Assembly (NCBI RefSeq): GCF_964204645.1
Contig: NC_134033.1
Span: 9,370,655 to 9,434,654, forward strand
Direction: 5' to 3'
Source: Tubulanus polymorphus
Taxonomy: Eukaryota > Animalia > Nemertea
DNA: 64,000 nt
In this document: piece after piece, positions 20,496 through 36,649 of the stretch
Position numbering within the stretch: position 1 is the first letter of the stretch
Layout of the letters: each line of letters starts with the position of its first letter
The notes under the pieces: generated by a model
Told to the model about the DNA's origin: nothing
The model's input: the letters and a program-made list of their open reading frames with translations, nothing else
Database searches by the model: none
Made by a program: the position numbers and the translations under genes

Positions 20496-20846
20496 TGAAG
20501 AAAACAACACAGTAATAACTACAGTCGAGAATTTGGACGAAAGCAAAGAAAACAACAACACAGTAATAACTACAGTCGAGAATTTGGACGAAAGCAAAGA
20601 AAACAACAACACAGTAATAACTACAGTCGAGAATTTGGACGAAAGCAAAGAAAACAACAACACAGTAATAACTACAGTCGAGAATTTGGACGAAAGCAAA
20701 GAAAAAAACAACACAGTAATAACTACAGTCGAGAATTTGGACGAAAGCAAAGAAAACAACAACACAGTAATAACTACAGTCGAGAATTTGGACGAAAGCA
20801 AAGAAGAAAACAACACAGTAAAAACTTCAGTCGAGAATGTGGATGA
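20496..20846. repeat. 51-bp minisatellite, about 7 copies
   Basis: Unit aaagaaaacaacaacacagtaataactacagtcgagaatttggacgaaagc, which reads as KENNNTVITTVENLDES. Confidence 0.95.
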
Positions 20847-21145: not shown

Positions 21146-21296
21146 AAATTCGCCGCAATATCGAAATATCGAATGTCTATAATCGCCACAATATCGAAAT
21201 TCGCCACAATATCGAAATTCGTCACAATATCGAAATTTGTCACAATATCGAAATTCGTCACAATGTCGAAATTCGTCACAATGTCGAAATTCGCCG
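21146..21296. repeat. 18-bp tandem repeat, about 8 copies
   Basis: Unit aaattcg(c/t)cacaat(a/g)tcg. Confidence 0.9.
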
Positions 21297-21579
21297 TCCA
21301 AGTACGTTTAGGGAATGTGATGATTCACACTCTCGTGGGAATTGCTCTAATACCTATAGGCACTACAAGGTTCTCATCATAAATGTTTTCCAGCAACGAT
21401 TTTGTGACTGATTGAGGGAGAGCCGATGGAATGCTGTGCAATATCTTTAAATCCTGCATCACAGTTTGGTAGCCATATTTTAACACAGCGTGCTCTATTG
21501 TCATTGCTTCCAACAACTTCAACTCTCTAATGAGATTAGAGACCTATAATAAAAAAATAAAATCATTCAAAATTTAAAC

Positions 21580-22388
21580 AAATAAAATTTATCCAAAGGT
21601 TAATTAAACAGGAGTAGATTTATTTTTCTTGGACAGGTGTCTCATTGAGATACTGATATCACAATACTTAGTATCACAAATTGTTTTCCTGTATCTCAAA
21701 TTTGTGGGCGGGGGGGGGGATTGTATGGGGGTACCCCTAGGATCGTTTTAGTTATCTTTTTTTATGCAGTGCAAATAAATCATTGTTTTTATATCAACTT
21801 TACACTGTTTAGCTCATTTGAATCAGAGAAAAGACAGGGGCAGATCCAGACGCGGATCCGTACGCGGCGCGCCCCTATTTTTTGCCAGAAAAAATCGCAT
21901 AATGTTGTTAAAAAATCCTCTTGGTTGAGCTCGGATTCTGTATTCCTGACTCGCCATCGCGCTTCCAATCATTGTATCATTATCTAAGTATCTTTGTCAC
22001 AGGGATATTATTGGTTTTGCAGCAGCGCGTCCGCGTGAACTGTCCGTGTACACGCAGTGGCGGATCCAGATGAAATAAAATTTATCCAAAGGTTAATTAA
22101 ACAGGAGTAGATTTATTTTTCTTGGACAGGTGTCTCATTAAGATACTGATATCACAATACTTAGTATCACAAATTGTTTTCCTGTATCTCAAATTTGTGG
22201 GCGGGGGGGGATTGTATGGGGGTACCCCTAGGATCGTTTTAGTTATCTTTTTTTATGCAGTGCAAATAAATCATTGTTTTTATATCAACTTTACACTGTT
22301 TAGCTCATTTGAATCAGAGAAAAGACAGGGGCAGATCCAGACGGGGCGTACGCGGCGCGCCCCTATTTTTTGCCAGAAAAAATCGCAA
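21580..22388. repeat. Local direct duplication of about 320 bp (21580-21898 and 22073-22388)
   Basis: Near-identical from aaataaaatttatccaaagg to gccagaaaaaatcgca. Confidence 0.9.
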
Positions 22389-23944
22389 TTGGTGTAATCT
22401 ACCACTACTTTTGGCCGTGTGCGAACTACCATTGGGATCAGTAAAAGTAACTGAAAATGCGTCTGTCATGTTTGAAATGATCGTTACTGTGGTGTCATGG
22501 CCTATACTTTCATCGATCATCCGTTCTCGCGTTTGTTTATTATTGTCTGCGGACGTTCGAAGTTGAAAGCGGTGAGTTTTAAGTTCAAATTCATACTTAA
22601 AATCAATGTTTCTTATTATATATTTATCAATTACTCGTTCTTAAGGTCCGTGGGAACCATGTGGTATATGATATCCATCACCAAACTTGTTATAATTCAT
22701 GATTTGATGCTTGAAACAACTCGTGGACCGGCCCAACTGTCAAAATGCTAAAGAGGCAAGTGCCCGTGACGTCAGATAATTTATGCGCAAGAAGGGCGAT
22801 GTGAAATGTTAACATTTGGAGGAACCATCTCACCATTTAGTTTCACTACGTGTCGGAGTTAGTTTTCGCGCAGTGTTTGATTTCACCCGCGGCAATTAAA
22901 TAGGCCTGCTGAGCTTGCGTCAGTTTTCGCGCAGTACCGGTAATGTAAAACATTCTGTGATACGGTATTAGTTTTCACGGGTTATAAACTATATTTATCC
23001 ACCAATGAAATATTTGAAAAATATAATTCAATATTTAATATGATTATCGAGCTCACGCATTATTAATAAATTATCGAAATGTTTTACATTTTGTCTTTTT
23101 CCTCATCATTTTTTCTGTATATTTGGATAGTTGTCCCTTCCAATTCTTTTCTCAGAAATAAAAACTAGATAATTTTATTCGTAGGCCTAAATGTCAAAAA
23201 CAAGACCAAAATGTAAATAATAATGAAAGCTTCATTTTCAGATAAATACAGATTTCCGTGTACAGCGTACAAACAGGCCATTATTATTTTCATTCTCGAA
23301 CAATTTAAGGTATACCGCAATGAGAGTATATTTTTTCATTCAATTTCTCATCCAAACTGTTTGATTCTTTCAATTTTCCACCGAGTCATTAAACATTTTT
23401 CTTTATTAGATTTAATTTTCAACAACTAGTTACAACAAAATCAAGGTATGGAACTGTGAAAGAATGAATTATATTCAAATGACTGAAAGGACTGAATTAA
23501 AAATCGTTTTTCATTTTTCGTGATGATTCGTTCGCAGAATAATACGTAAGACCATGATAAATTAGATTTAATTTTCGTATTTTCATATTTTCTTTTTTAC
23601 TCAAATTGTTAAGTGATCTTAAATGAAGTTACTCATATAATTTTAAGCTGCAACTTCAGCTGATATTCTAGGCAATTCACATGAGTTGGTCACTTAATGA
23701 TATATTCTAAAGGAGTTATCACTTATTCATCACTAAAGTTACAAATCTTACTTTAACTTGTATTGAATATCAGGCTTAAATTATCAAGACACAGCGTCCT
23801 TTTAACACGGTTTTAGGCACGGATATCCTTTTGTAGACATGAGCTTTAGTTTTGTTGTTTGAAAATTGAATCTGAACATATTTTCAATAACGACATCTAC
23901 GTGAATATTTTTTCATGTACCAATTAAAAAGTTTTAAATTCTAG

Positions 23945-25810
23945 GAAAAAACGTGGTCCATATAGGCGGTCATATTCAGTCGATGCCTTAAAAAAGCGCT
24001 ATCACTAGCTACATCAGGAAACAGCATAAGAGCTTCAGCACGTGTTTATGGCATCCCAGAGGCCACATTACGAGACAAATTGGCAGAAAGGTCTGTTGTC
24101 GGAGCCAAGAGTGGCCCACAGCCCATACTTGGCTTAGAGATTGAGGAACAGTTAACAACATGGGTAGAGAATATGGCAAAAATTGGTTATGGGCGAACAA
24201 AACAAGAATTATTAGATACAGTTCAGCGATGCCTCAACAAAGACGAAATGCAGACCCCATTTAAAGAAAATAGACCTGGCAAAGATTGGTTTTATTTATT
24301 CATGAAACGCCATCCGCACCTTGTAATTAAATCTACAGAAAATCTGTCGATGCCTAGGGCTCTATGTACGTCAGTAGATATCATCAGTACATGGTTTGCA
24401 AATTTTGAGAGAGAGATAACGAACCTGGATGGTGGAGAAGAATTGCTAAAGGATGGGTCTCGGATATATAATTTCGATGAAAGCGGTGTTTCTCTCTGCC
24501 CAAAATCCGGCAATGTCATTGGTATAAGAGGAAAGCCACTGTATAGCATCGTGAACGAGAATAGAACTCAGATTACTCTGGGTGCCTGTGTCAATGCAGT
24601 TGGATCTGTCATACCACCTATGCTTATATTTCCTGGTCAACGATTTCGATATAATCCAATTCTTGGTGCACCTCCTGGAACTTATTTCGGTTGTAGTGAG
24701 AACTGGTGAATTAATAATCCTCTTTTTTTATGGATGGATAGCCAATCATTTTGTTGCTAACATTCCGAAAAAGAGGCCAATATTGCTTCTTCTTGATGGC
24801 CATTCATCTCACATTGACCTTGAGATCAGTAAGTTGTGTAGGAATGAGGGGATTTACCTTCATTGTTTCCCACCACATGCCAGTCATATCATTCAGCCAC
24901 TTGATGTTAGTTTCTTTAAGCCATTTAAAACAGCATGGAAAAAACATGTTAAGATTTTCCGGGATTCTAAGAATGGACAGCAAGTGACCAAACAGTCATT
25001 TTCTTCCGTAATTAACAATGCCTGGTTTGAAGCCCTAAAACCTTCAAATGTTACCAATGGCTTCCGTGCCACTGGTATATATCCACTTAATGCGCATGCT
25101 ATCAAAGGAGAAAAGCTAGCCCCTTCCACGTCATGGGACGATGCTGCCTCAGCAACTATACAACTTAAGGCAAGGTCTCCACATAAAATTCTAAATGACC
25201 CACCAGAGGTAACCGCCTTGAGAATGTTTGAGGACGCACTATCTCCAGAAAAGGTCAATATTTACAATACGAGATTGGTTGAGGGATTTCACCTTTTAAA
25301 CGATGCCGTCTACGATATTTGGAAAACACAAGAAAAAGCTAATGCTGTTTTGACAGAAAACTTGAATCCACCATCGGTGGATCAGCGAACCATTGACAGC
25401 GATCGAGAACCTTCCTCATCAACTAACGAAAATATTAAGAGTTCGTCATCATTTGATGAAACACTCAAATATCCAAAATTAGGAAAACGATTCAAAAACG
25501 ATGACAAAAGAAAACTAGGGCTGACTTTCCATCTAAGCATCTTACTGGGGATCAAATGATGGCATTTTTCAACAGGAAGACTGACAGAGCAGACACAAAG
25601 AGGAAAACAGCAAAGAAAGGAATAGATGAGAACGTCTGCCAAAAATGCAGACAGAATTTCACAGCGGAATCAATTGAAGGAGGCGAGTGTGTTGGCTGTG
25701 ACCACTGTCCTAGGTGGTTTCACAAAAAGTGCACGGATATTGGTTGTGACGAAGGCAACGAAAATGAATCGATTGATGACCTCGACTTCTGGTGCACATT
25801 TTGCATATGA
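23945..25810 (+). pseudogene. pogo transposase: HTH-psq, CENP-B HTH, DDE_1 (DD35D) and C-terminal PHD finger; about 3 frameshifts
   Basis: SIRASARVYGIPEATLRDKL, PFKENRPGKDWFYLFMKRHP, YNFDESG, LLLLDGHSSH-QPLDVS (35 residues between the 2nd and 3rd Asp), and PHD C-x2-C...CDHCPRWFHKKC...WCTFC. Preceded by a splice acceptor ttctag. Confidence 0.93.
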
Positions 25811-25821
25811 TTTTTTTTTGT

Positions 25822-26140
25822 AATGTAACATACATGAAATGTTCATGATGTTACGTTTCTCTTTTCCTCTCATACATTTCATGGCATCGTTTGTTAAACA
25901 TACATGAAATGTTCATGATGTTACGTTTCTCTTTTCCTCTCATATGGCATCGTTTGTTAAACATACATGAAATGTTCATGATGTTACGTTTCTCTTTTCT
26001 TCTCATATGGCATCGTTTGTTAAACATACATGAAATGTTCATGATGTTACGTTTCTCTTTTCCTCCCATATGGCATCGTTTGCTAAACATACATGAAATG
26101 TTCATGATGTTACATTTCTCTTTTCCTTTCATACATAGAT
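25822..26140. repeat. 63-bp minisatellite, about 5 copies
   Basis: Unit gttaaacatacatgaaatgttcatgatgttacgtttctcttttcctctcatatggcatcgttt. Confidence 0.95.
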
Positions 26141-26210
26141 GGCAAAAGCTGATTCTCACATATAATGTTTTCGAGAATTAACTGCACATTTCTTTCATTT
26201 CAGCTGTAAA

Positions 26211-26756
26211 GTGAATGTAATCATTTATGGAGACAGTTTCGTCGAACGGTTGAGGAAAATATGGGATTTCAGCCACCCAGAAATATGTGCAAACTTGGCT
26301 GGCTACGGAGGTGCAAAAATACCTGATATTGACAATCAAATAATGGCGCTGCATAGAAACAAATATGAGCTTGTAATTATTTCTGTGGGAGGGAATGATT
26401 TAGATAGCCACTGTGTTGTAGAAAAGAGCATTGCAGCATATGACTGCATGATTCAAAAGTCAACCACCAGACATTATACCACCGATTTTGTTTGCCTCCC
26501 ACTGTACAAACGCGCCAACACCAGGAATTGCAATGAGGTCGAGTACAACAAAAAAATAGATAATTTCAACGGGTACATGTTTGACGAATTGGATGGACCA
26601 GCAGTAAAAGTATGGAAATGTAACAATCTCGGTTGTCGAAATGGTGCTTGGCCTACAAGACTGCTTCAGGACGGGGTTCATTTTAATGCAAATGCGAACA
26701 ATAAATTTAAAAACCATGTCCGTCAAATCATTATGAACAAATGGTATAATCTTTAA
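26211..26756 (+). CDS. SGNH/GDSL hydrolase-domain protein (probably a terminal exon)
   Basis: All four blocks are present: IIYGDSFV, GYGGA, VGGNDL and DGVHF. Open frame of 181 codons, with a polypyrimidine tract and CAG acceptor at 26185-26203. Confidence 0.85.
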   Translation: MNVIIYGDSFVERLRKIWDFSHPEICANLAGYGGAKIPDIDNQIMALHRNKYELVIISVGGNDLDSHCVVEKSIAAYDCMIQKSTTRHYTTDFVCLPLYKRANTRNCNEVEYNKKIDNFNGYMFDELDGPAVKVWKCNNLGCRNGAWPTRLLQDGVHFNANANNKFKNHVRQIIMNKWYNL

Positions 26757-27280
26757 AAGCGTCCACATTCTGTAAACCTGTGCGGTTCACGTACAATGTG
26801 TACGGAACCTGCGCTATAATACGTCATAGATTTTGTAAAATTTTGAATGTTTGATTTTTGTTAATTTACTTTACCAACTAAAACTATCTATTTATTACAT
26901 AAATGAATAAACATCGTTTCAATTTCACATAAATCCTTTATATTCGATGATTATTTGTCGTGAAACTTTTCGTTATCGCTGAAAAGTAGCGCTACTAATA
27001 GCTATATTCGCTATTTATATTTTTCTCCGCGACTCCTAGTAGATCCAAAAAAATGTTATGTTGTTTTTCTTCAGAACGACAGAAAGATTCGTTATTTTTC
27101 GGAAAATCGCTATTTTTGATTGGTTCTAGTTCTCGCTCAAATTTATTCGTCCGAACGTCAGAAAATATTATTGTTCATTTATTGGTTTAACTTTATTTAA
27201 ATGCTTGAAACCAATTAGCCTTGATTACTTAAAATACTTAACATACCTTTCTTTTGTAGTATCAAAAACATATTTATCAG

Positions 27281-27638
27281 CCCTGTTTATGCTGTTGGAA
27301 TGCATCACCATTCGGCGGCTACACTCGATGTAGGTACAGGTTACATTTGCCAATATGAACCAGAAAATATCAAAGACCCCAATGCGATCATGGACCAAGA
27401 CAGAAACACGAAGCAAGTCCTGGCCTATCTTAAAAGAAAAGATGCTGCTGCCCTTGCTTCAATTAAAGAATGCGTACACAGTTGCATCGTTGTGAAATGC
27501 AACGGAGAGGCGGTAACACGTAGTCGTTTTATCGGGCCTGAGCAGAAGTGTACATTGGGCTTCAAGTGTAAGGAAGATGACGTTGACAGAATTAAGGCTG
27601 CACTTCTGTTTACACACCTTATAGTACATGTAAAGTAG
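27281..27638 (+). CDS. HIRAN-domain protein (probably a terminal exon)
   Basis: PVYAVGMHH...LDVGTGYICQYEPENIKDPNAI...LAYLKRKDAAAL matches the HIRAN pattern VGxxY/H...L-x-REPxNxxDxNAI...GYL. Acceptor tttatcag lies just upstream. Confidence 0.7.
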
Positions 27639-30600
27639 TTTTAAAACTCCCAGAAATGTAGCATACATAAAATGTTTATGATGCTACACGATCGGAGACT
27701 TCCCCGACTTAAAGTTTTTCAGATAATGTTTTTGTTATTTTCTTATATTTCATTATTCCTTGTTTAAATGATAATGTATATGTAAAATAAATTAGTAAGT
27801 ATATATAGGTTTCCTTTAAATTCATATTTCTCGCAAGTATATCGAAATCCAGCGTTCGTAGAATGAAAAAGTGATATGCGCGAAAACTAACGCTAGTGCG
27901 CGAAAACTACCGACATGACATGAGGAAATGGTCCCTGGATATCACTTCCGGTTGCAATGCATTTTGGAATTTTTTTACAAGGGGTTATCCCAAGGATGCC
28001 ACTCTACCACCTAGTGGCTGATTTGGACATGTAAGTGCTTTCAATCTGAGAAGGTAGGTAATATTCGTTAAGTGCGCGAAAACTCCCGAAACTACCCTAT
28101 AGTACACTATCCCTGATGGAATAATAAGCTCCACTCGACAAACTCGTTCCCGTGCATTTTTATCTCTGTTTCAGCACACACACAGCCCCTCTACCATCAA
28201 TGCCTAACCCCTGTTTGACCAACTGTGGGCGTTTTCCTTTGAAACATAAGCCTAATTGTAAAAGATAAGCATTAATCTATGTTAATGCTGCATCTTTATC
28301 ATGAAACCTAAGAAAGATTATTCTATTAATTAGGCCTATTCAAATTTTCTGTCCACTACCACGTGGAAATGATAAGACCCAGTCAAAATTGTGCATCACG
28401 CTTTGACCAAGAAATTGGTTCTAGGCTATAAATTTTACGACTCAAGCGAATCTTTTCTTCAACAAAGCCGCTTTTAGTTTGATGCAAAATGAAATTTGCT
28501 TTTAAAATGTGTAACTAGGCCTAATCAAAAGGATATTTCAAAAGCAAACTTTGCCGGGCCAAGAGCCATATTCATAGAATTCAATTTTTTCCGAACCATT
28601 ATGCCTCTTTCATCATAACATTATTTATCCTATTTCAAGATCTTAGGCCTACAAGTAGAGAGAGGGCCTACGTTTGGTTCAAATCGGAATTTTAAGATTT
28701 ATTTCATTTAATTCCAGGTTTTCACTGTAGATTATCAAAGACATGTGGCTTTGTGGGAGTTCATGGTTGTTTGATAATCCATTATTTGTAAGTGTAAGGC
28801 TATTTGAGGGATTCGAAACCGACATTTTGTAAATTTTGTAGCTTTATTACGTTTAATTCCAGATGTTTATCATGACATGTTTCATTTCGGGGGTTTGTCA
28901 GCGAGTTGGTATGCTGTCGGCAGAAGTAGTTTGATAATTCGTTTCATGTAAGTAAACAGCTATTTGAAGGATTCGAAACCGAAATCTGTATTGTGAATTT
29001 TTTAGTTGTATTTTGTTTGTCCGCGAGTTTGTATACTGTCAAATGAAGTTTCTTCGTCAATTTGTCGTATGTAAGTATCAATCTATAGGTTATATAGGCC
29101 CTATTAGGGGTTCGATACAGAAATTTGGTGAATTCCTCAGATTTATTTTAATTTATTCCAGGTTATTTATCTGAAAAATATGTACTTTATTTCATAGGTA
29201 AGTCTTTGATTGAAAACTAAAAATGGATGATAGTACTAAATTTGATGTTGATTCACATGACCAATCTAGTAAGTATGGCTCACTCGTCTTTTAGAATAAG
29301 AGACCTATTGCATTAATCCTTCAATTCAAGTTGCTATACAACCTTTTATACAGATATTTACTTTATCAATATAAACATGTATTTGCCATTAGCCATACAA
29401 TTCAGTAAAACTTTTCCCGTCCAGATTTTGAAACATCATTTGACTCAATTTTTCCTCCTAGAAAATTGCTTTAGCTCATTCCAATGTTCGCAGTAAAAGT
29501 GAATGTAGCGTGTATGATTCCCATCCATCAATTTTGTCTTGTTTCGTATTTTTAGCGAAAATCTCGAAAAAGTCTGACGTCGAGGCAGGATGTGGCCAGA
29601 CAAAGACATATTCTTGGGAAATATTTAAAGACGCATGGCAAACACACTATTGTTCACTTTTTCCTATCCTTATTTTGAAATTGAAGTATTGTAATAAACT
29701 ATTGATTTATTTTTGTTGATCAACGCAACTAGTTTTGTTGTTTTCTTTCTTAATTTACATTTGAATTGGATGGTCATCTTGCGTAGGAGTCAGTTTGTCA
29801 TCGAAGCAATACAGTCTAACTTGTTGACGTCTCAGATGCAGCGGGGCAGGGCGGTCATTATATTGTGGACTTATCCAAATAACACTTAAACAGCCCAACG
29901 TGTTTCAGTGTGTAAACTCCGTCGTACTCGGCATTATAAGACAGTGAGGAATTGAGTTTTAGTCACCTGAGCCCTCGGCTTGATTCGACCAAAAAGACCT
30001 TAACTGACTTCGCAGAATTTGATTATGAGTCAAGGATTTTCTAAATTTCTGAATGCTTTCTCTGGTTTTAAGATCAATTCAAATTCAATCTTCAAAATAT
30101 TTTATTGAAAGAAATTCTACTGAAGACAGATTTTGAAATGAAGGATATATCCAGGCAAATAATTATAGCATAATCAACTGATGATCATCAAGGTGAAGTT
30201 TTCATTCATCTTCGGCTAATTTGTCTACCCCTGATGATTGAAGCATTTTGGTTACTCGCGCCAATTAGTCAGCCACAGTCGATTTTCATGCCATCAGACC
30301 TCTTTCCATCTGTAATTAAGCAATTAAGCAATAATTACTTAGGTAAGGAGCAAAATAATATATAGATATCTTAGGAGACTATTTGAAATCATGAGTTTGT
30401 TGTGAAAATCTATTACTACAGTCTCGTAGAGCATAGACACCAAGCCACGTGGCATTGGTATTTTTAGGGCTATTCAGTTTACTCCAAAACAAGTCAATGA
30501 TTAACATTAAAAAAGCTTCATATCAAGGGTATGTCGCAGGACTCGTGACGCCCATGAATTATCATCCCATAATTACAATGAATCCAATTCTGCATGTACG

Positions 30601-31433
30601 TTAGCACGACTGATTACTAATCCAAATATTGCATTACAAAAAAACAATTACGCAAAACGTCAAGTACTTACAGCATCTGAGACAGTTGCGCTTAAGTTAG
30701 CGTGTTAAGTTAAGTCTTTGGCTGTCAATGTCGAAAAAGCCTAATTTGAAACATACATTTGCGCACTGTGGTTAAATATTCCTGCAAGAATCCGCAAAGG
30801 AATTGAAGACCGTAGTGCCCAGTTCATTCCACGAATAATAGCTGGAAAGAAAGTAATCAAAATAAATTGTCATGCACATTCAGTGTAAACCAGGCCATAA
30901 CTAGCTGCTATTAAGGCATTCCACTGACTGGCTCTACCCATTATATTTAGGGCCTAAATCTATTCTAGGCGCATCCCCCAAAAAAGCTAGGCATCAAGTA
31001 AGTAGCCAACAATGATCATTGCTTCACCGAGTAGGCCTACTCATTTGCTAGCATACTCATATTATTAAAGAAATCATTTAATACATTCCCTGGTTAACGG
31101 ATTCTCACCTTAAAATACATAAACTCCGCTGTCGTTGTCATCGATCCGAGTCGTCAACTGAACGCGGAAGTAAAATTCCGTGTGAAAATTCCTACAATTT
31201 CTGTCCATATCACGTTGATTTGACCCCGAAATCTTCAGGAAATGTAGCCAACGTAAATTGATTTACGAATAGAATTATTCAATTGACTCATTTTAGAAAT
31301 CATGGTTTCGTGAAATTCATTAAAGTCCTAAAACTCGCGATAAATTTAAGCCGAAAATGATTTCAACCATCCACCATGTTGTTTCATTAATAAAACAATT
31401 GTTGCGCGCCGGCGCTGTACTGTGATAATGCAT

Positions 31434-31499
31434 GGTTTCACAAGGATTCGAACCCTCGACCTCTCAGTTGGGGGTCAAACACCTTATCCACCATGCCAC
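31434..31499 (-). other. tRNA-derived (SINE head-like) Pol III promoter
   Basis: The minus strand reads gTGGCATGGTGGataagg...gaGGGTTCGAATCCtt, giving A and B boxes at tRNA spacing. The cloverleaf is incomplete. Confidence 0.65.
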
Positions 31500-31784
31500 A
31501 GGACAGGACGCTATTTTTAACGTTAGTGGGAGTACCGGACAGGGCGAGTCGCAATTGCTACTATCATCCGGTGTTATCTTTCAGTAAGTAATTTTAAGTT
31601 TAAAAAAGGACGGAGAGTGCATAGATATAATCTACGCGGAGCGAATGCGTGTTATATTACTATCAGAATTCTACATTTCAATTAGAAGCAGTTAGTTGTC
31701 GAGTCTGATAGAAGATGAATTTTATGTGCGAAAAAAAGTGGAAAATAAGTAAATAATAATAATAACAATCAACAGAATTACAAA

Positions 31785-31813
31785 AGGGTTTTCGACGAAA
31801 GTCAGAAAACCCT
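31785..31813. repeat. Terminal stem-loop AGGGTTTTC-N-GAAAACCCT of a non-autonomous repeat (Helentron/HINE-like); related copy at 43881-43912
   Basis: agggttttcgacgaaagtcagaaaaccct here and tagggttttctgtttctttacagaaaacccta at 43881. Both have similar adjacent sequence running to tttccac. Confidence 0.5.
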
Positions 31814-32276
31814 AAAAATATGAATACCTGATTTCAATAATGATGTACCAACAAGTGCGTGAAAGATCGATACCGGTACCCGGTATTGGGGAAATCCCAG
31901 TTGAAGTCTACTACAAGTCACAAGTGGAATTGTTTGTTTGTTTCTGTTTCAGCCTCTCCTGTTGCCAGGCAGAATAATTTTTTTTCGTAGGATGATAGAG
32001 TCACAAAACTCAATTTTTTATCTGAATTAGGGTTAGGGTGAATTCCTACGAAAAAGATTATGCAGGCACTGGGCTCCATCAACATATACGGAAGTTTGAA
32101 GTTTTCATGAAGACTAGGCCTACTCGTGTCAATAATTGTATAATAATTGAAAATAAAACAAGACTGTATAATTTTTTGATATAATCATTTTAAACAAATA
32201 AAAACGAAGTAATTCAAATGCTAAATAATAAACGATTTATTTGCAATTTATACTGTATAAGCAACTACAGTTCAAC

Positions 32277-33017
32277 TCAGATTTCGGTCCAAGGGCTGCG
32301 TAACGCATCAAAGACATTTCTATATACAGGAATTTCATTATTGTCAGCATCCCTTTCACAAGCCCCATCCCCACTCTCTCCATCGCTGCTGTCGTCAAAA
32401 TAGTCGTCGTCATCGAATGATTCATGGTCAGACTCATCATTCTCGGACTCATCAAGGTCATCTTCTGGATTCTGTTCAGTATCGTCAACCAGAGGGGGAA
32501 GTTGCCTGCGTCGATTACGAGGAAGTGCTGCACTACAATGGCGTTTTAGCTGAGCCATTGATGGGAAGTAAACCGAACAGGTAAGACATGTTCTTTCTTT
32601 CAGAGTTGGTAGAGCGACAACCGGATTGAAAAGATCATAAGGTATTTCTTTAAACTCCTTCCTAATTTCTGGGTTACAATTTCCACCTCGAGAAAGCATG
32701 ATATTCTGAGATGGTGATGCAAATTTCATCGTATTAGAATCTACAATTTCCCCGGGAGCAGGAATTTTTATGCCACTAGTAGTTTGTGTTAGTGGGTATG
32801 GGCTTGGTAAAAATCTACCCCCCAAGACATCGGGCCAGTTGCTCCGCCATGGGCCACAGCACTCTCTATCGTCACAGCGCACAATTTGGAGAACGTACCG
32901 GCTTTGCCGTACATGGGCAGCCGCCCATTTTAAATCCGCGGGGGACAATATAATCAGCAGGATCAATGAATTCTGCCACCACAGGGTTCGAATCAATGAC
33001 TACATTAGACCACACAG
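32277..33017 (-). pseudogene. 3' part of Zator-like DDE transposase
   Basis: SVWSNVVIDSNPVVAEFIDP, HVRQSRYVLQIVRCDDRECC, PYDLFNP, RTCLTCSVYFPS...KRH and an acidic tail. Joins in frame with 40174 once the insertion is removed. Confidence 0.8.
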
Positions 33018-34444
33018 AACGCAGTCTCAAATGTTTTGTGACTTTCTCAAAATGTATCAAAAATTTAACTAATTTTTAGTTCATAAGTCCTCAAATATTC
33101 ATAAATGAACAGTTAAAAATTGTTGAAACATGTCGACTCTGCTGTAAAATCAACCTATTAACAGTCCGGAATTTGGGATAATATTGGGCTTTAGAGAACA
33201 TAATGCCCCCGAGGTCTTCACATTTACAGAAAAGATTACGTAAGTGATTCACGCGCAGCTCGCGATAGGCGCACAATAGAAATCTGAGCCGCGCGTTCTT
33301 TGAGTGTCACCAATTAAGAGGACCGCTATTGTGAAAATTGACTGCGGGAGGAATATTCCTCCCAATGTCAATCGATGGAAATTTGACCATGGGGTCCGAT
33401 ATTCAAAGGATTGACTTTGGGAGGAATATTCCTCCCAAGGTCAAACGAAGAGAATTTGACCTTCAGGTCTGATATTCAAAGTATCGACTTCGGGAGGAAT
33501 GTTCCTCCGAATGTCAAACGAAGGAAACTGGACCTGGTCTGTTATTCGAAATATAGACTTTGGGATTAATGTTCTTCCAAACGACTAAACGCTAAAACCT
33601 GAGCTTTTAGAATGATAGGTGTATATATTAATTATATTGGTGTAATAATTGTTTTAATAAGTAGTATACTATAGCGACGACACCAGACATATTTAGGGAA
33701 TTTTAGTGATAATGTACACGGTATTTGAGGGTCTGCGACGAATGATTTATAGAAAGTTGAATAGCTGTAGTGCAGGTTCTAATAATAAGGCTTATATAGT
33801 CTTCACATCGCAATCAGTTGTTAGAATGCATCTTCCTTTTTCTTTACTTGATCTTGAGTCTTTGACTAGTTAAATTTTTTCTTCATTGATTGACGCTGGG
33901 AGGTCTAGATCAAATTATACTGTTAATCAAATCAATTATTTTTCAACTGCAAATTCACACTTGATATTGATATTAACAATCAATATTACTTATTTCATTA
34001 TATGGCGCACTGCTGCAAATTGTAATCAGTGTGCTTTGCATGAGTATAAAATTAACACAAGCTGAAAGAATCGAAATTTAAATACGTGGATGATAAAAAT
34101 CAAGTTAAAAGGCGTAGGGACGGAGAGATCTGGCGAAAAAAAACAGTAATGGGTGCAAAATGGACCCATGCCTAATCGCCCGACCAAAAACGACGGACCA
34201 GACCTGAGTCAAATTAAGCGTGTTGATTTAAACTGGTTCTGGAAGTCAGTCACTTCGCTTGGTTTAAGTATGGACTCGTTTTAGATTCCATGGTTTAAGC
34301 ATTGTTTAGTAACGAGTGAATGGGTTTGAAGTTGAATGTGAAATGAATTTGAACATGAAAATCTGCGCGCTCTTTGGTAAGCCATGCGTAAAATTTAAGT
34401 CGGACCTGATTCGAGCCAATTTAGCCCCGACAAATCGTCTCTAT

Positions 34445-34770
34445 AGCCGCGATCACACGTGTATTTTTTTAGGCCAGGGCCAAATTTGGGCCGGACCAAC
34501 TGTTCACACGGGTGCCAATGGGCCCGAGCCTGTTTGGCCCGGGCCAAATTTGGCCCGACCAAAAACGTCGGACCGGGCCCGAGCACCAGACAAATGACTG
34601 CGTGTGAATTGCAACTAGCACCGTAAATGATCCACTTCGCTTTGTTTGAGCATTGTTTAGTATCGAGTGAATGGTTTGCGTGTGAACGCACTCTCTAATT
34701 ACCAAATTTGGCCCGAGCCTAATCGGTGCTAATTTGGCCCGGGCCAAATCGTCTCCGTGTGATCGCGGCT
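34445..34770. mobile_element. About 300-bp MITE with TIR agccgcgatcacacg and internal GGGCCAAATTTGGCCC palindromes; also at 61953-62253
   Basis: 15-bp TIRs with a 3-bp TAT/ATA flank on both sides. Present in both copies of the long-TIR element. Confidence 0.7.
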
Positions 34771-36649
34771 TATGTGGGTCATGATTGTTGAGAGAAATTT
34801 TTCCCTTTATGTTTGCAAATTAGCCATTGTCCTAGTTTTAACTTCTGATTTGTACCCTGTATAGGGTTTATATTTCTGTTTGTACTCTTTCATAGAAATA
34901 CGACAGATATCAAATGGAATCTTTGATTTAAGACACTGTAAACCGGTACACACTAATATGTCCATCCATCCGACCTACGAGCGATCATCTCATTAATGTG
35001 ATAATTGCTCGTAAATCCGACAGCTACGTTTTACAACTAGAAATATATTAGATCAGATTCCTAATAATAAAATCATTACTATTAAGAATATGTTATTGAT
35101 TATGGATAAATTCAAAAAGAATTGACAAAATATATTGCTTTGAATGGCCTTTAGATATTGGATAGGGCGATTTTGAATTATTTTTGGGGAATTTTATCGA
35201 GAAGCTCAAACTCCCTAAGGCGATAAATTCTTTAAGGCAGATCTTTTCCGATTATGATCCCACCATATGAATTGTTCACGAAACTATTATGTATAAACAC
35301 CTCACAATTAACGAAATGAATCAGTGACGTCCTGTTGCACAAGCTATATTACACAATGATAAAAAGCCTATTATAGTCGAGTTGGATTTCTCGATGTATA
35401 AATGCAGGGAGGGTTGGGAGCTTTATGTTCAATAACATTAGGTTCCAATGTTTGCTCTATGGATTTCAAAATAAAAGAAAAATCTACGTTTAAACGTGAT
35501 ATCTGTTTCATTACTCGTGATATATCGGGGAATCTCTGCAATAAAATTGGACGATTTCAAAAATATTACAAAATGAGCAAATTGCGATTCTTAGTGATTT
35601 TTGCTAACAGTATTGATTCTAGCGTATACGTGGATTTGTGTGATATGTAATAAGTAACGTAGCGAATAATCAAAGTATCTACTGTAGCTAGATATGACAA
35701 TTAAAAATCCCCCAGAATATCTCCTTCAATATACCCTCATCCGTTCAAAAAAGATCACCTGGTAAAGATTTCCTATGTAGAAATCTAAAAAATCTAAACC
35801 CTGGGTAAACATACCCTGGGTAAAAATCCCCCAAATATTCATACTTGGTGATTGTCAAGAACATGTCAAAGCACGATGTTTCTCGAATTTGCAATGAGAC
35901 TGAAATATGTTTGAACTTTTAAATGAAATCTTTCGTTGCGATAAATTCTTACGGAAAAAATAAATTGTAAGAATTAATAAGAGTAATAAACTTTTACTTG
36001 TAATATCTCAAGATTCGAACTGGAATATTTTTGAATTTCAGCTGTGCGATGCCATGAATTATTAGAAATAACGTACTTTTGATATTAAATATTTTAGATT
36101 CAAGCTAGTGTAATATATTTGAAATGCGCGATGAACCCCTTTACTAAGCTGTGCAATAACTACATGTATATGTACTAATTTAGTATCAATGAAACGTTAA
36201 TTTGTAGTATGTTTTAATTTAAATAGCATAGTTTGTATGGGCATATTGATATCCTTACGGTATTCGACAGTAAAATATGAATAAATTGGATATACGTATC
36301 AATAATACGAATTAATTGACCTTAAGATTGTATCTACTTATAATCCCTTCAAAGGGAGGGGATTACCTAATTTGAAGAATTGGGGATTTTTACTCGCTTA
36401 CTTAGATGTTTTGAATTATTGACTTAGTTATTTTATTAAGTTTAAGTTAATCACTAGTAAGTTTATTCATTGACCACTTGCATGATAGTTCTTGATATAT
36501 TCATTATATGCAATGAAATGAAATGTAAGTTCATCACATTTCTAAACTCATTAATACCGATTTTAATTGTTTTAAGCCCCATGAAAAATATGTGATGTCA
36601 TTTTATTGAAAGCTTTATGTTTTATTAACATTGGCAGTAGTTCTCATAA

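Follow-up and report, generated by a model that had tools for sequence, protein, structure and literature searches.

A low-copy pogo-superfamily transposon family of the nemertean Tubulanus polymorphus that probably carries esterase and HIRAN-like coding exons inside its terminal inverted repeats

Results

In the genome of the nemertean Tubulanus polymorphus (268 Mb), fewer than ten copies or fragments were found of a transposon family which is probably a low-copy pogo-superfamily element with two extra coding exons, one for an SGNH/GDSL esterase and one for a HIRAN-like protein, inside its terminal inverted repeats (TIRs). One of its copies lies in the window analysed here, a stretch of 64,000 nucleotides (contig NC_134033.1, positions 9,370,655 to 9,434,654, forward strand; C9 below), where it spans positions 22524-28097 on the + strand. 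The window element is a decayed, left-truncated and dead copy. A sequence-only reading of the window had described it as a multi-gene transposon made up of a PHD-bearing transposase, an SGNH hydrolase and a stand-alone HIRAN domain. That these are parts of one element and not chance neighbours was confirmed by (i) a distant copy on contig C5, which has the modules in the same order between TA-flanked TIRs; (ii) the presence of the cargo only in copies of the family; and (iii) matching selection on cargo and transposase.

Copies of the family and selection on the cargo

The C5 copy has a left and a right TIR, both next to TA, and between them the helix-turn-helix (HTH), DDE, PHD, SGNH and HIRAN modules in the order seen in the window and on a single strand. 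Its TIRs are 17.6 kb apart because of nested insertions. The modules of the C5 and window copies share 45-78% amino-acid identity, and the two copies are ~68% identical. Three further copies are partial: the C8 copy comprises SGNH, HIRAN and the right TIR (87-95% nucleotide identity) and breaks off 14 nt ahead of the SGNH acceptor; the C6 copy has the HTH, an internal deletion and then SGNH; and the C10 copy consists of a DDE fragment, the hairpin motif described below and SGNH. The copies at C10:5.19 Mb (DDE and PHD) and at C10:4.936 Mb were excluded from the comparison. Outside the copies of the family, no SGNH or HIRAN cargo was found in the 268 Mb, except for one distant SGNH match with 28% identity.

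Between the window and C5 copies the proportion of synonymous differences (pS) is 0.72-0.93, that is, saturated, and the proportion of nonsynonymous differences (pN) is 0.19-0.33. The pN/pS ratio is 0.26 for the SGNH exon (95% bootstrap interval 0.19-0.33), 0.38 for the HIRAN exon (95% bootstrap interval 0.30-0.47) and 0.27-0.43 for the transposase segments; in frames shifted by one or two bases it is 0.96-1.78. A low ratio at saturated synonymous sites, which is lost in the shifted frames, implies that the cargo encoded selected proteins throughout the divergence of the sublineages, as the transposase did. By this comparison of codons, the predicted cargo is shown to have travelled and diverged with the transposase under purifying selection. 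In the T. polymorphus genome the cargo-bearing family is extinct and of low copy number.

Termini and subterminal motifs

Homology of the window copy with other copies begins at 22524, which places its left limit further out than the 22850 given by the sequence-only reading. The truncated left subterminal region (22524-22935, + strand) is 94% identical to the C1 copy from 22524 on, and its part from 22796 to 22935 matches the left end of the C5 copy with 90% identity. In the C1 copy, the left TIR, preceded by TA, lies 82 bp beyond the equivalent of 22524. In the window, the DNA to the left of 22524 consists of unrelated repeats, and neither the left TIR nor the ~82 bp next to it was found anywhere in the 64 kb. 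As its left TIR is gone, the window copy cannot move. The right subterminal region (27877-28099, - strand) contains the 26-bp right TIR at 28072-28097 (GGGTAGTTTCGGGAGTTTTCGCGCAC on the - strand), which abuts the flanking TA at 28098-28099, so that the right end reads ...AACTCCCGAAACTACCC (ACTACCC) and then TA. Homologous right ends on C8, on C10 and at two places on C5 finish at the identical terminal base followed by TA, and all seven of the seven termini of the family found in the genome, including both ends of the C5 copy, adjoin TA. Both terminal repeats are thus known from the C5 copy and the left one from C1, the window copy having the right TIR only.

The motif GTTTTCGCGCA occurs five times in the 64 kb: on the + strand at 22862 and 22923 (22862-22872 and 22923-22933, both in the left subterminal region) and on the - strand at 27877, 27897 and 28073 (all three in the right subterminal region). 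Shuffled versions of the window contained 0.93 occurrences on average, and none of 100 shuffles reached five. The inward-facing subterminal motifs and the right end next to TA, both noticed earlier from the letters alone, therefore hold. Between the left subterminal region and the transposase exon lies an A+T-rich 5' spacer or intron (22936-23944, + strand) with no similarity to C5 or C1; it is not conserved between the subfamilies.

The transposase and its PHD finger

The main transposase exon (23945-25810, + strand) is a pseudogene in the window. It comprises an HTH_psq-like domain, HTH_Tnp_Tc5 (24137-24319), DDE_1, a linker and a C-terminal PHD finger (25637-25804). All protein searches were run exon by exon. 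HTH_Tnp_Tc5 scored 26.3 bits (Pfam cut-off 22.2), DDE_1 (PF03184) 55 bits and PHD (PF00628) 26.0 bits (cut-off 24); the HTH_psq match is weak (13 bits), and all other Pfam domains reported here for the transposase and the SGNH exon exceed their cut-offs. The catalytic aspartates are encoded at 24476, 24795 and 24903, and 35 residues separate the last two, which agrees with the DD35D transposase proposed earlier. The translated PHD finger follows the pattern C-x2-C-x16-C-x2-C-x4-H-x2-C-x20-C-x2-C (Cys4-His-Cys3).

With the frames rebuilt against C5, the exon shows four disruptions: a frameshift in the A-run at 23990-23995, a TGA at 24707-24709, a frameshift in the T-run at 24723-24729 and a 1-nt indel near 25505. 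The frameshifted state of the transposase had been recognised correctly, and amounts to three frameshifts and one stop. The PHD finger is likewise present as claimed; it is not a separate unit, and forms the C-terminus of the transposase. In the C5 copy an unbroken frame runs from the linker into the stretch leading up to the PHD, and it is this frame that is cut near 25505 in the window; in P0109, a relative from another assembly, the protein ends ...FVCMKCL directly after the PHD. The acceptor of the transposase exon (ttag|GAAA) is conserved in C9 and C5.

Relatives of the transposase with 36-43% identity, in other eukaryotic assemblies, also have the HTH, DDE_1 and a C-terminal PHD. Such PHD-tailed pogo transposases were seen in several of these assemblies (L065/L066 10001-11281, L067 9633-12156, P0109 and P0097); TIRs were looked for at L065 and L067 and not found. 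A transposase that ends after its PHD finger, with no cargo in the 10 kb around it, is what the distant relatives (36-41% identity) of other animals show; within the T. polymorphus genome this separation of transposase and cargo was not seen.

A second form of the transposase region was found in sequencing run X1 (record 3, corresponding to 23141-25856), which differs from the window by 13 substitutions and 9 gap positions and probably represents the other haplotype. Neither the TGA at 24707-24709 nor the extra T at 24723 is present in it, but it has a 7-nt deletion of its own at 25019; each allele seems to carry private disabling changes.

The genome also contains a different pogo family, the DDE core of which is 36% identical to that of the present one. 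At least eight of its copies (C8:7361394, C5:13121589, C5:13703765, C5:15952953, C7:10007390, C10:7253345, C12:10202081 and C19:107745) have open frames of 588-775 codons with zero stops, and this family may still be active. No PHD match was obtained at these loci. One copy of this second family is nested inside the C8 copy of the cargo-bearing element.

The SGNH esterase exon

The SGNH/GDSL esterase exon (26204-26756, + strand) has 183 codons, is open and follows a tttcag acceptor (26198-26203). It matches Lipase_GDSL_2 (PF13472) with 41.4 bits (cut-off 32.9), and the active-site residues are encoded at 26235 (Ser), 26307 (Gly), 26394 (Asn), 26670 (Asp) and 26679 (His). The blocks GDS, GYGG, GGND and DGVH are complete in both C9 and C5, as expected for the SGNH hydrolase with all catalytic blocks that had been proposed; the C5 exon is also open and 63% identical to that of the window. 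The AlphaFold2 (AF2) model has a pLDDT of 90.7 and TM scores of 0.7-0.79 to PAF-AH Ib, TesA and other SGNH hydrolases.

Searched exhaustively against 1.84 billion representatives, the SGNH profile returned only remote relatives of ~190 amino acids, the best genuine match having an E value of 1.9e-10, and word-based protein searches with the SGNH exon and with the HIRAN exon gave zero matches. The nearest SGNH relatives examined (P0006, and P0012/P0155 on 89 contigs), one of which is from the oyster Pinctada, sit just upstream of an RVT_1 (reverse transcriptase) gene, a position that identifies these relatives as ORF1 (first open reading frame, ORF) esterases of long interspersed nuclear elements (LINEs). 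The profile also matches the zebrafish L2 ORF1p esterase (PDB 4c1b, E 2.8e-5; PMC3905857), and Atlas points the exon to GDSL proteins of ~196 amino acids, chiefly molluscan. Identity to the retroelement esterases is only 25-30%, in pairwise comparison and not from a tree; judging by these alignments, the nearest kin examined appear to be LINE ORF1 esterases. The top match of the SGNH profile, P0001 (L054 10001-13978; 1325 amino acids, on a eukaryotic contig), was discarded: the match is scattered over 18 short stretches, BLAST found no similarity to the element, and it is probably an artefact of repeats.

The sole other SGNH match in the T. polymorphus genome, the distant one mentioned above, lies at C2:12185135-12185626 and contains a single stop. 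Possibly it represents a LINE ORF1 esterase of T. polymorphus, and as such a candidate for the kind of source from which the cargo came.

The HIRAN-like exon

The third coding exon (27260-27638, + strand; 125 codons, open) is preceded by a polypyrimidine tract and a tag acceptor at 27257-27259, and has the core EPENIKDPNAI from 27357 on. In a genome-wide HIRAN scan a host exon scored best (55 bits), followed by the C8 copy of the element. A BLASTP alignment of the exon with this host HIRAN exon gave 16 of 40 identical residues (40%, E 2e-5), spanning the QxEPxNxxDxNAI core and the next helix. The hhalign probability is 77%, and the Atlas feature scores reach 0.81, which serves as a lead only. 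No significant match was found among the PDB sequences. On these similarities, the domain is very probably HIRAN-like.

Between the SGNH and HIRAN exons lies a short interspersed repeat of ~155 bp (26967-27121, + strand), with matches of 80-88% at six or more unrelated loci. It is common to the C9 and C8 copies, is not present in C5, and is a passenger outside the design of the element.

Stem-loops behind the three reading frames

Each of the three reading frames is followed by a stem-loop on the + strand: 12 nt past the transposase stop (25822-25856; dG -14.8 kcal/mol, z -3.9), 24 nt past the SGNH stop (26780-26814; dG -19.7 kcal/mol, z -4.4) and 19 nt past the HIRAN stop (27657-27688; dG -13.4 kcal/mol, z -5.1). 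They share one shape, in which an outer stem and a single bulged A precede an inner stem of 6 bp with an AUG tri-loop; the one behind SGNH has this shape with a different sequence. The C5 copy keeps all three with compensatory changes, among them an A-U to G-C exchange in the one behind SGNH, and the post-HIRAN stem-loop of the window is identical in 26 of 26 nt to the hairpin behind the PHD in C5. Across the 268-Mb genome there are 13 occurrences of the 22-nt core, all of them inside the family. Behind the transposase the core is repeated in four to five tandem 63-bp units, which together with the stem-loop extend from 25822 to 26133 (+ strand; Tandem Repeats Finder: period 63, 4.0 copies). 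Stem-loops were also located at L032 near 5334, 4345 and 3748. Rfam gave no match in the element, the stem-loops included.

Splice signals and a proposed mode of expression

In all three reading frames the conserved core lacks a preceding ATG (in the SGNH exon there is none ahead of the catalytic Ser, in the HIRAN exon none before the HIRAN core), and each frame begins at an AG. The intactness ascribed to both cargo ORFs is therefore to be qualified: they are open and start at AG acceptors, and they have no start codon of their own ahead of the conserved part. C9 and C5 agree in the position and phase of the transposase acceptor, and likewise in those of the HIRAN acceptor. On C5, a public gene model (P0144) places a 47-nt leader exon with an ATG and a ~57-nt intron directly upstream of the transposase exon, and the phase of this leader donor is compatible with the transposase exon, with the HIRAN exon and with the SGNH exon of the window. 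Both C9 and C5 also have a conserved GT donor that lies 4-6 codons ahead of the SGNH stop and fits the HIRAN acceptor in phase. Given the phases of the two donors, one leader could be spliced alternatively, or SGNH and HIRAN could be fused. Spliced-leader (SL) trans-splicing onto the acceptors without an ATG was considered and dropped, as an AUG supplied by the SL would not be in frame with the HIRAN exon; to our knowledge there is no evidence of SL trans-splicing in nemerteans.

We tentatively propose that one upstream promoter would drive all three reading frames. A short leader exon with the ATG would be joined by alternative splicing to one of the three acceptors (transposase, SGNH or HIRAN), or else SGNH would be joined to HIRAN, and each message would end near one of the family-specific stem-loops. 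The PHD finger may tether the transposase to histone H3 tails, and the HIRAN protein may bind free 3'-OH DNA ends that arise from excision or integration. The esterase could have the role that it has in LINE ORF1 proteins, for instance deacylation or an association with lipids or membranes. The scheme in full, that is, a three-cistron pogo unit in which a shared leader is spliced to a PHD-transposase, a LINE-derived esterase and a stand-alone HIRAN, a stem-loop closes each message, HIRAN keeps hold of the 3'-OH ends, either those of the excised element or those of the donor gap, and the esterase does what it does in LINE ORF1 particles, is possible but doubtful.

A number of observations weigh against the explanation of the family as a whole, including its modules and their proposed expression. 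The HIRAN exon stays below the Pfam cut-off for HIRAN (PF08797, 24.7 bits) in all three copies, with 17.6 bits in C9, 22.4 in C8 and 13.1 in C5, and its AF2 model, built from a 5-row alignment, is unusable (pLDDT 47); of the stand-alone HIRAN domain claimed earlier, the likeness of the core to that of the host exon stands, and a Pfam match above the cut-off does not. The phase of the SGNH acceptor differs between C9 and C5, and a leader exon with an ATG is not recognisable in the window copy. No splice joints occur in the X1-X4 contigs (library type not known), one contig being unspliced across the HIRAN acceptor, and the sole run flagged as possibly RNA has no part of the locus. Every copy of the family in the genome is broken, so that none of them demonstrates that transposition ever required the cargo proteins. 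Finally, within 10 kb of the transposases of the PHD-bearing relatives in other animals, neither SGNH nor HIRAN was found in the readable DNA. Relatives with the PHD and without the cargo imply that the PHD tail is older and wider, and that the cargo is a later, lineage-specific gain.

Alternative explanations

The cargo could be real and serve host conflict or transmission, by membrane passage for horizontal transfer or by interference with host repair or silencing, and SGNH and HIRAN might then be one spliced fusion. GDSL esterases are an accessory module of LINEs, long terminal repeat (LTR) elements and Terminons, for which membrane roles have been proposed (PMC5408684, PMC6431247, PMC3905857), and a fusion is in line with the shared phase of the SGNH donor and the HIRAN acceptor in both C9 and C5. 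However, the donor lies in a conserved Trp-Tyr codon pair, and its conservation may thus be a coding constraint only; and behind the SGNH stop come a hairpin and an AATAAA, as they would if the message ended there. We regard this explanation as unlikely.

Still less likely is domestication, in which the SGNH and HIRAN exons would have been co-opted as a host gene at this locus and stayed open while the transposase decayed. The open cargo ORFs of C9 beside four disruptions in the transposase, and the loss of the left TIR from this copy, are what domestication would lead one to expect. However, four disruptions in ~620 transposase codons correspond to ~2 expected in the 308 cargo codons, and the chance of finding zero is ~0.14, hence the contrast between open cargo and broken transposase is not significant. 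Moreover, the cargo has no start codon and no support from RNA, in the C8 copy, which is 94% identical, HIRAN is interrupted by a stop and SGNH by a frameshift and a 1.1-kb insertion, and HIRAN is broken in C5 as well.

Chance juxtaposition of a pogo pseudogene with host exons or independent insertions (e.g., a LINE ORF1 fragment), which could draw on the likeness of SGNH to LINE ORF1 esterases, on the window copy being unbounded on the side where its TIR is missing and on the relatives in other animals that have no cargo, is most improbable and for the most part refuted by the copy on C5: the modules follow one another in the same order between the two TIRs of this deeply diverged copy, and also in the three partial ones, neither a reverse transcriptase nor an endonuclease lies nearby, free-standing cargo is absent from the 268 Mb, the modules are equal in divergence and selection, a hairpin type specific to the family follows all three ORFs, and the idea that a host locus was segmentally duplicated is opposed by TIRs that adjoin TA and lie in unrelated flanks.

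Comparison with known systems

Tc1/mariner/pogo elements are minimal transposons that consist of two TIRs and one gene. With the pogo superfamily (Passer, Fot-like, Tigger; PMC7386202) the family shares HTH_psq/HTH_Tnp_Tc5, a DDE_1 domain of the DD35D type, short TIRs, the TA target-site duplication and a small intron before the transposase exon. It differs by the C-terminal PHD, the two coding exons inside the TIRs and the stem-loop of each ORF, and thus does not have the single-gene (transposase only) character of the superfamily. The domain inventory of the 2020 survey of pogo elements includes neither a PHD finger nor a second gene (PMC7386202), and the clade of PHD-tailed pogo transposases present in several animal assemblies is absent from it. 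No report of a pogo or Tc1/mariner element with PHD, GDSL or HIRAN was found in the literature searched.

The GDSL esterase module is common to LINEs, Penelope-like elements, LTR elements and Terminons (PMC5408684, PMC6431247). Like the esterases of retroelements (CR1/L2, RTE-type and Penelope ORF1, bdelloid LTR ORF3 and Terminons), the SGNH exon has ~190 residues and all four SGNH blocks (PMC3905857, PMC5408684, PMC6431247). Unlike these, it belongs to a cut-and-paste DNA transposon without an RNA intermediate, and forms a separate exon instead of a part of an RNA-binding ORF1. HLTF/Rad5-type HIRAN domains share with the third exon the stretch (Q/R)EPxNxxDxNAI followed by ...(H/Y)(I/L)KRxxAxxLAxI, which is aligned with the host HIRAN exon; the HIRAN-like exon of the element stands alone (~125 residues), with neither an SNF2 helicase nor a RING, and its fold is a prediction from sequence. 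In some CR1-like ORF1s a PHD finger is reportedly located just upstream of the esterase (Kapitonov and Jurka are said to have noted this in 2003), and a PHD is upstream of the esterase in the window element too. Accessory genes are known from other DNA transposons, such as the Myb-like ORF2 of PIF/Harbinger, TnpA of CACTA and the protease of some Mutator-like elements (MULEs). These share with the present family a second element-encoded protein under selection, and differ from it in superfamily and in accessory domains. For Tc1/mariner/pogo elements, the literature searched yielded no comparable accessory gene.

Two extra genes, selected for long enough to saturate synonymous sites, would mean that even Tc1/mariner/pogo elements can recruit accessory functions. 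The esterase, being in an element without an RNA intermediate, favours a role common to both classes of transposons (membranes, deacylation or interaction with the host) and argues against roles tied to RNA packaging. The transposon-borne HIRAN-like domain suggests a link between a fold that binds 3' ends and DDE transposition or the repair of gaps. If the three-cistron scheme is true, the family would be the first in the Tc1/mariner group to have accessory genes, and would give the first sign that the retroelement esterase module serves a DNA-only transposon.

Flanking DNA

A high-copy repeat begins exactly at the flanking TA of the element and covers 28097-29600 and beyond; at least 40 copies of it exist, with 90-96% identity over more than 1.5 kb. 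The sole ORF of at least 120 amino acids in 28100-36000 (32277-32996, - strand) has no Pfam match. The same repeat also interrupts the C6 copy of the family. Tandem repeats with units of 51 bp (6.7 copies) and 18 bp (8.5 copies), and a tandem pair of ~500-bp units, lie to the left of the element, at 20503-20843, 21146-21295 and 21570-22400.

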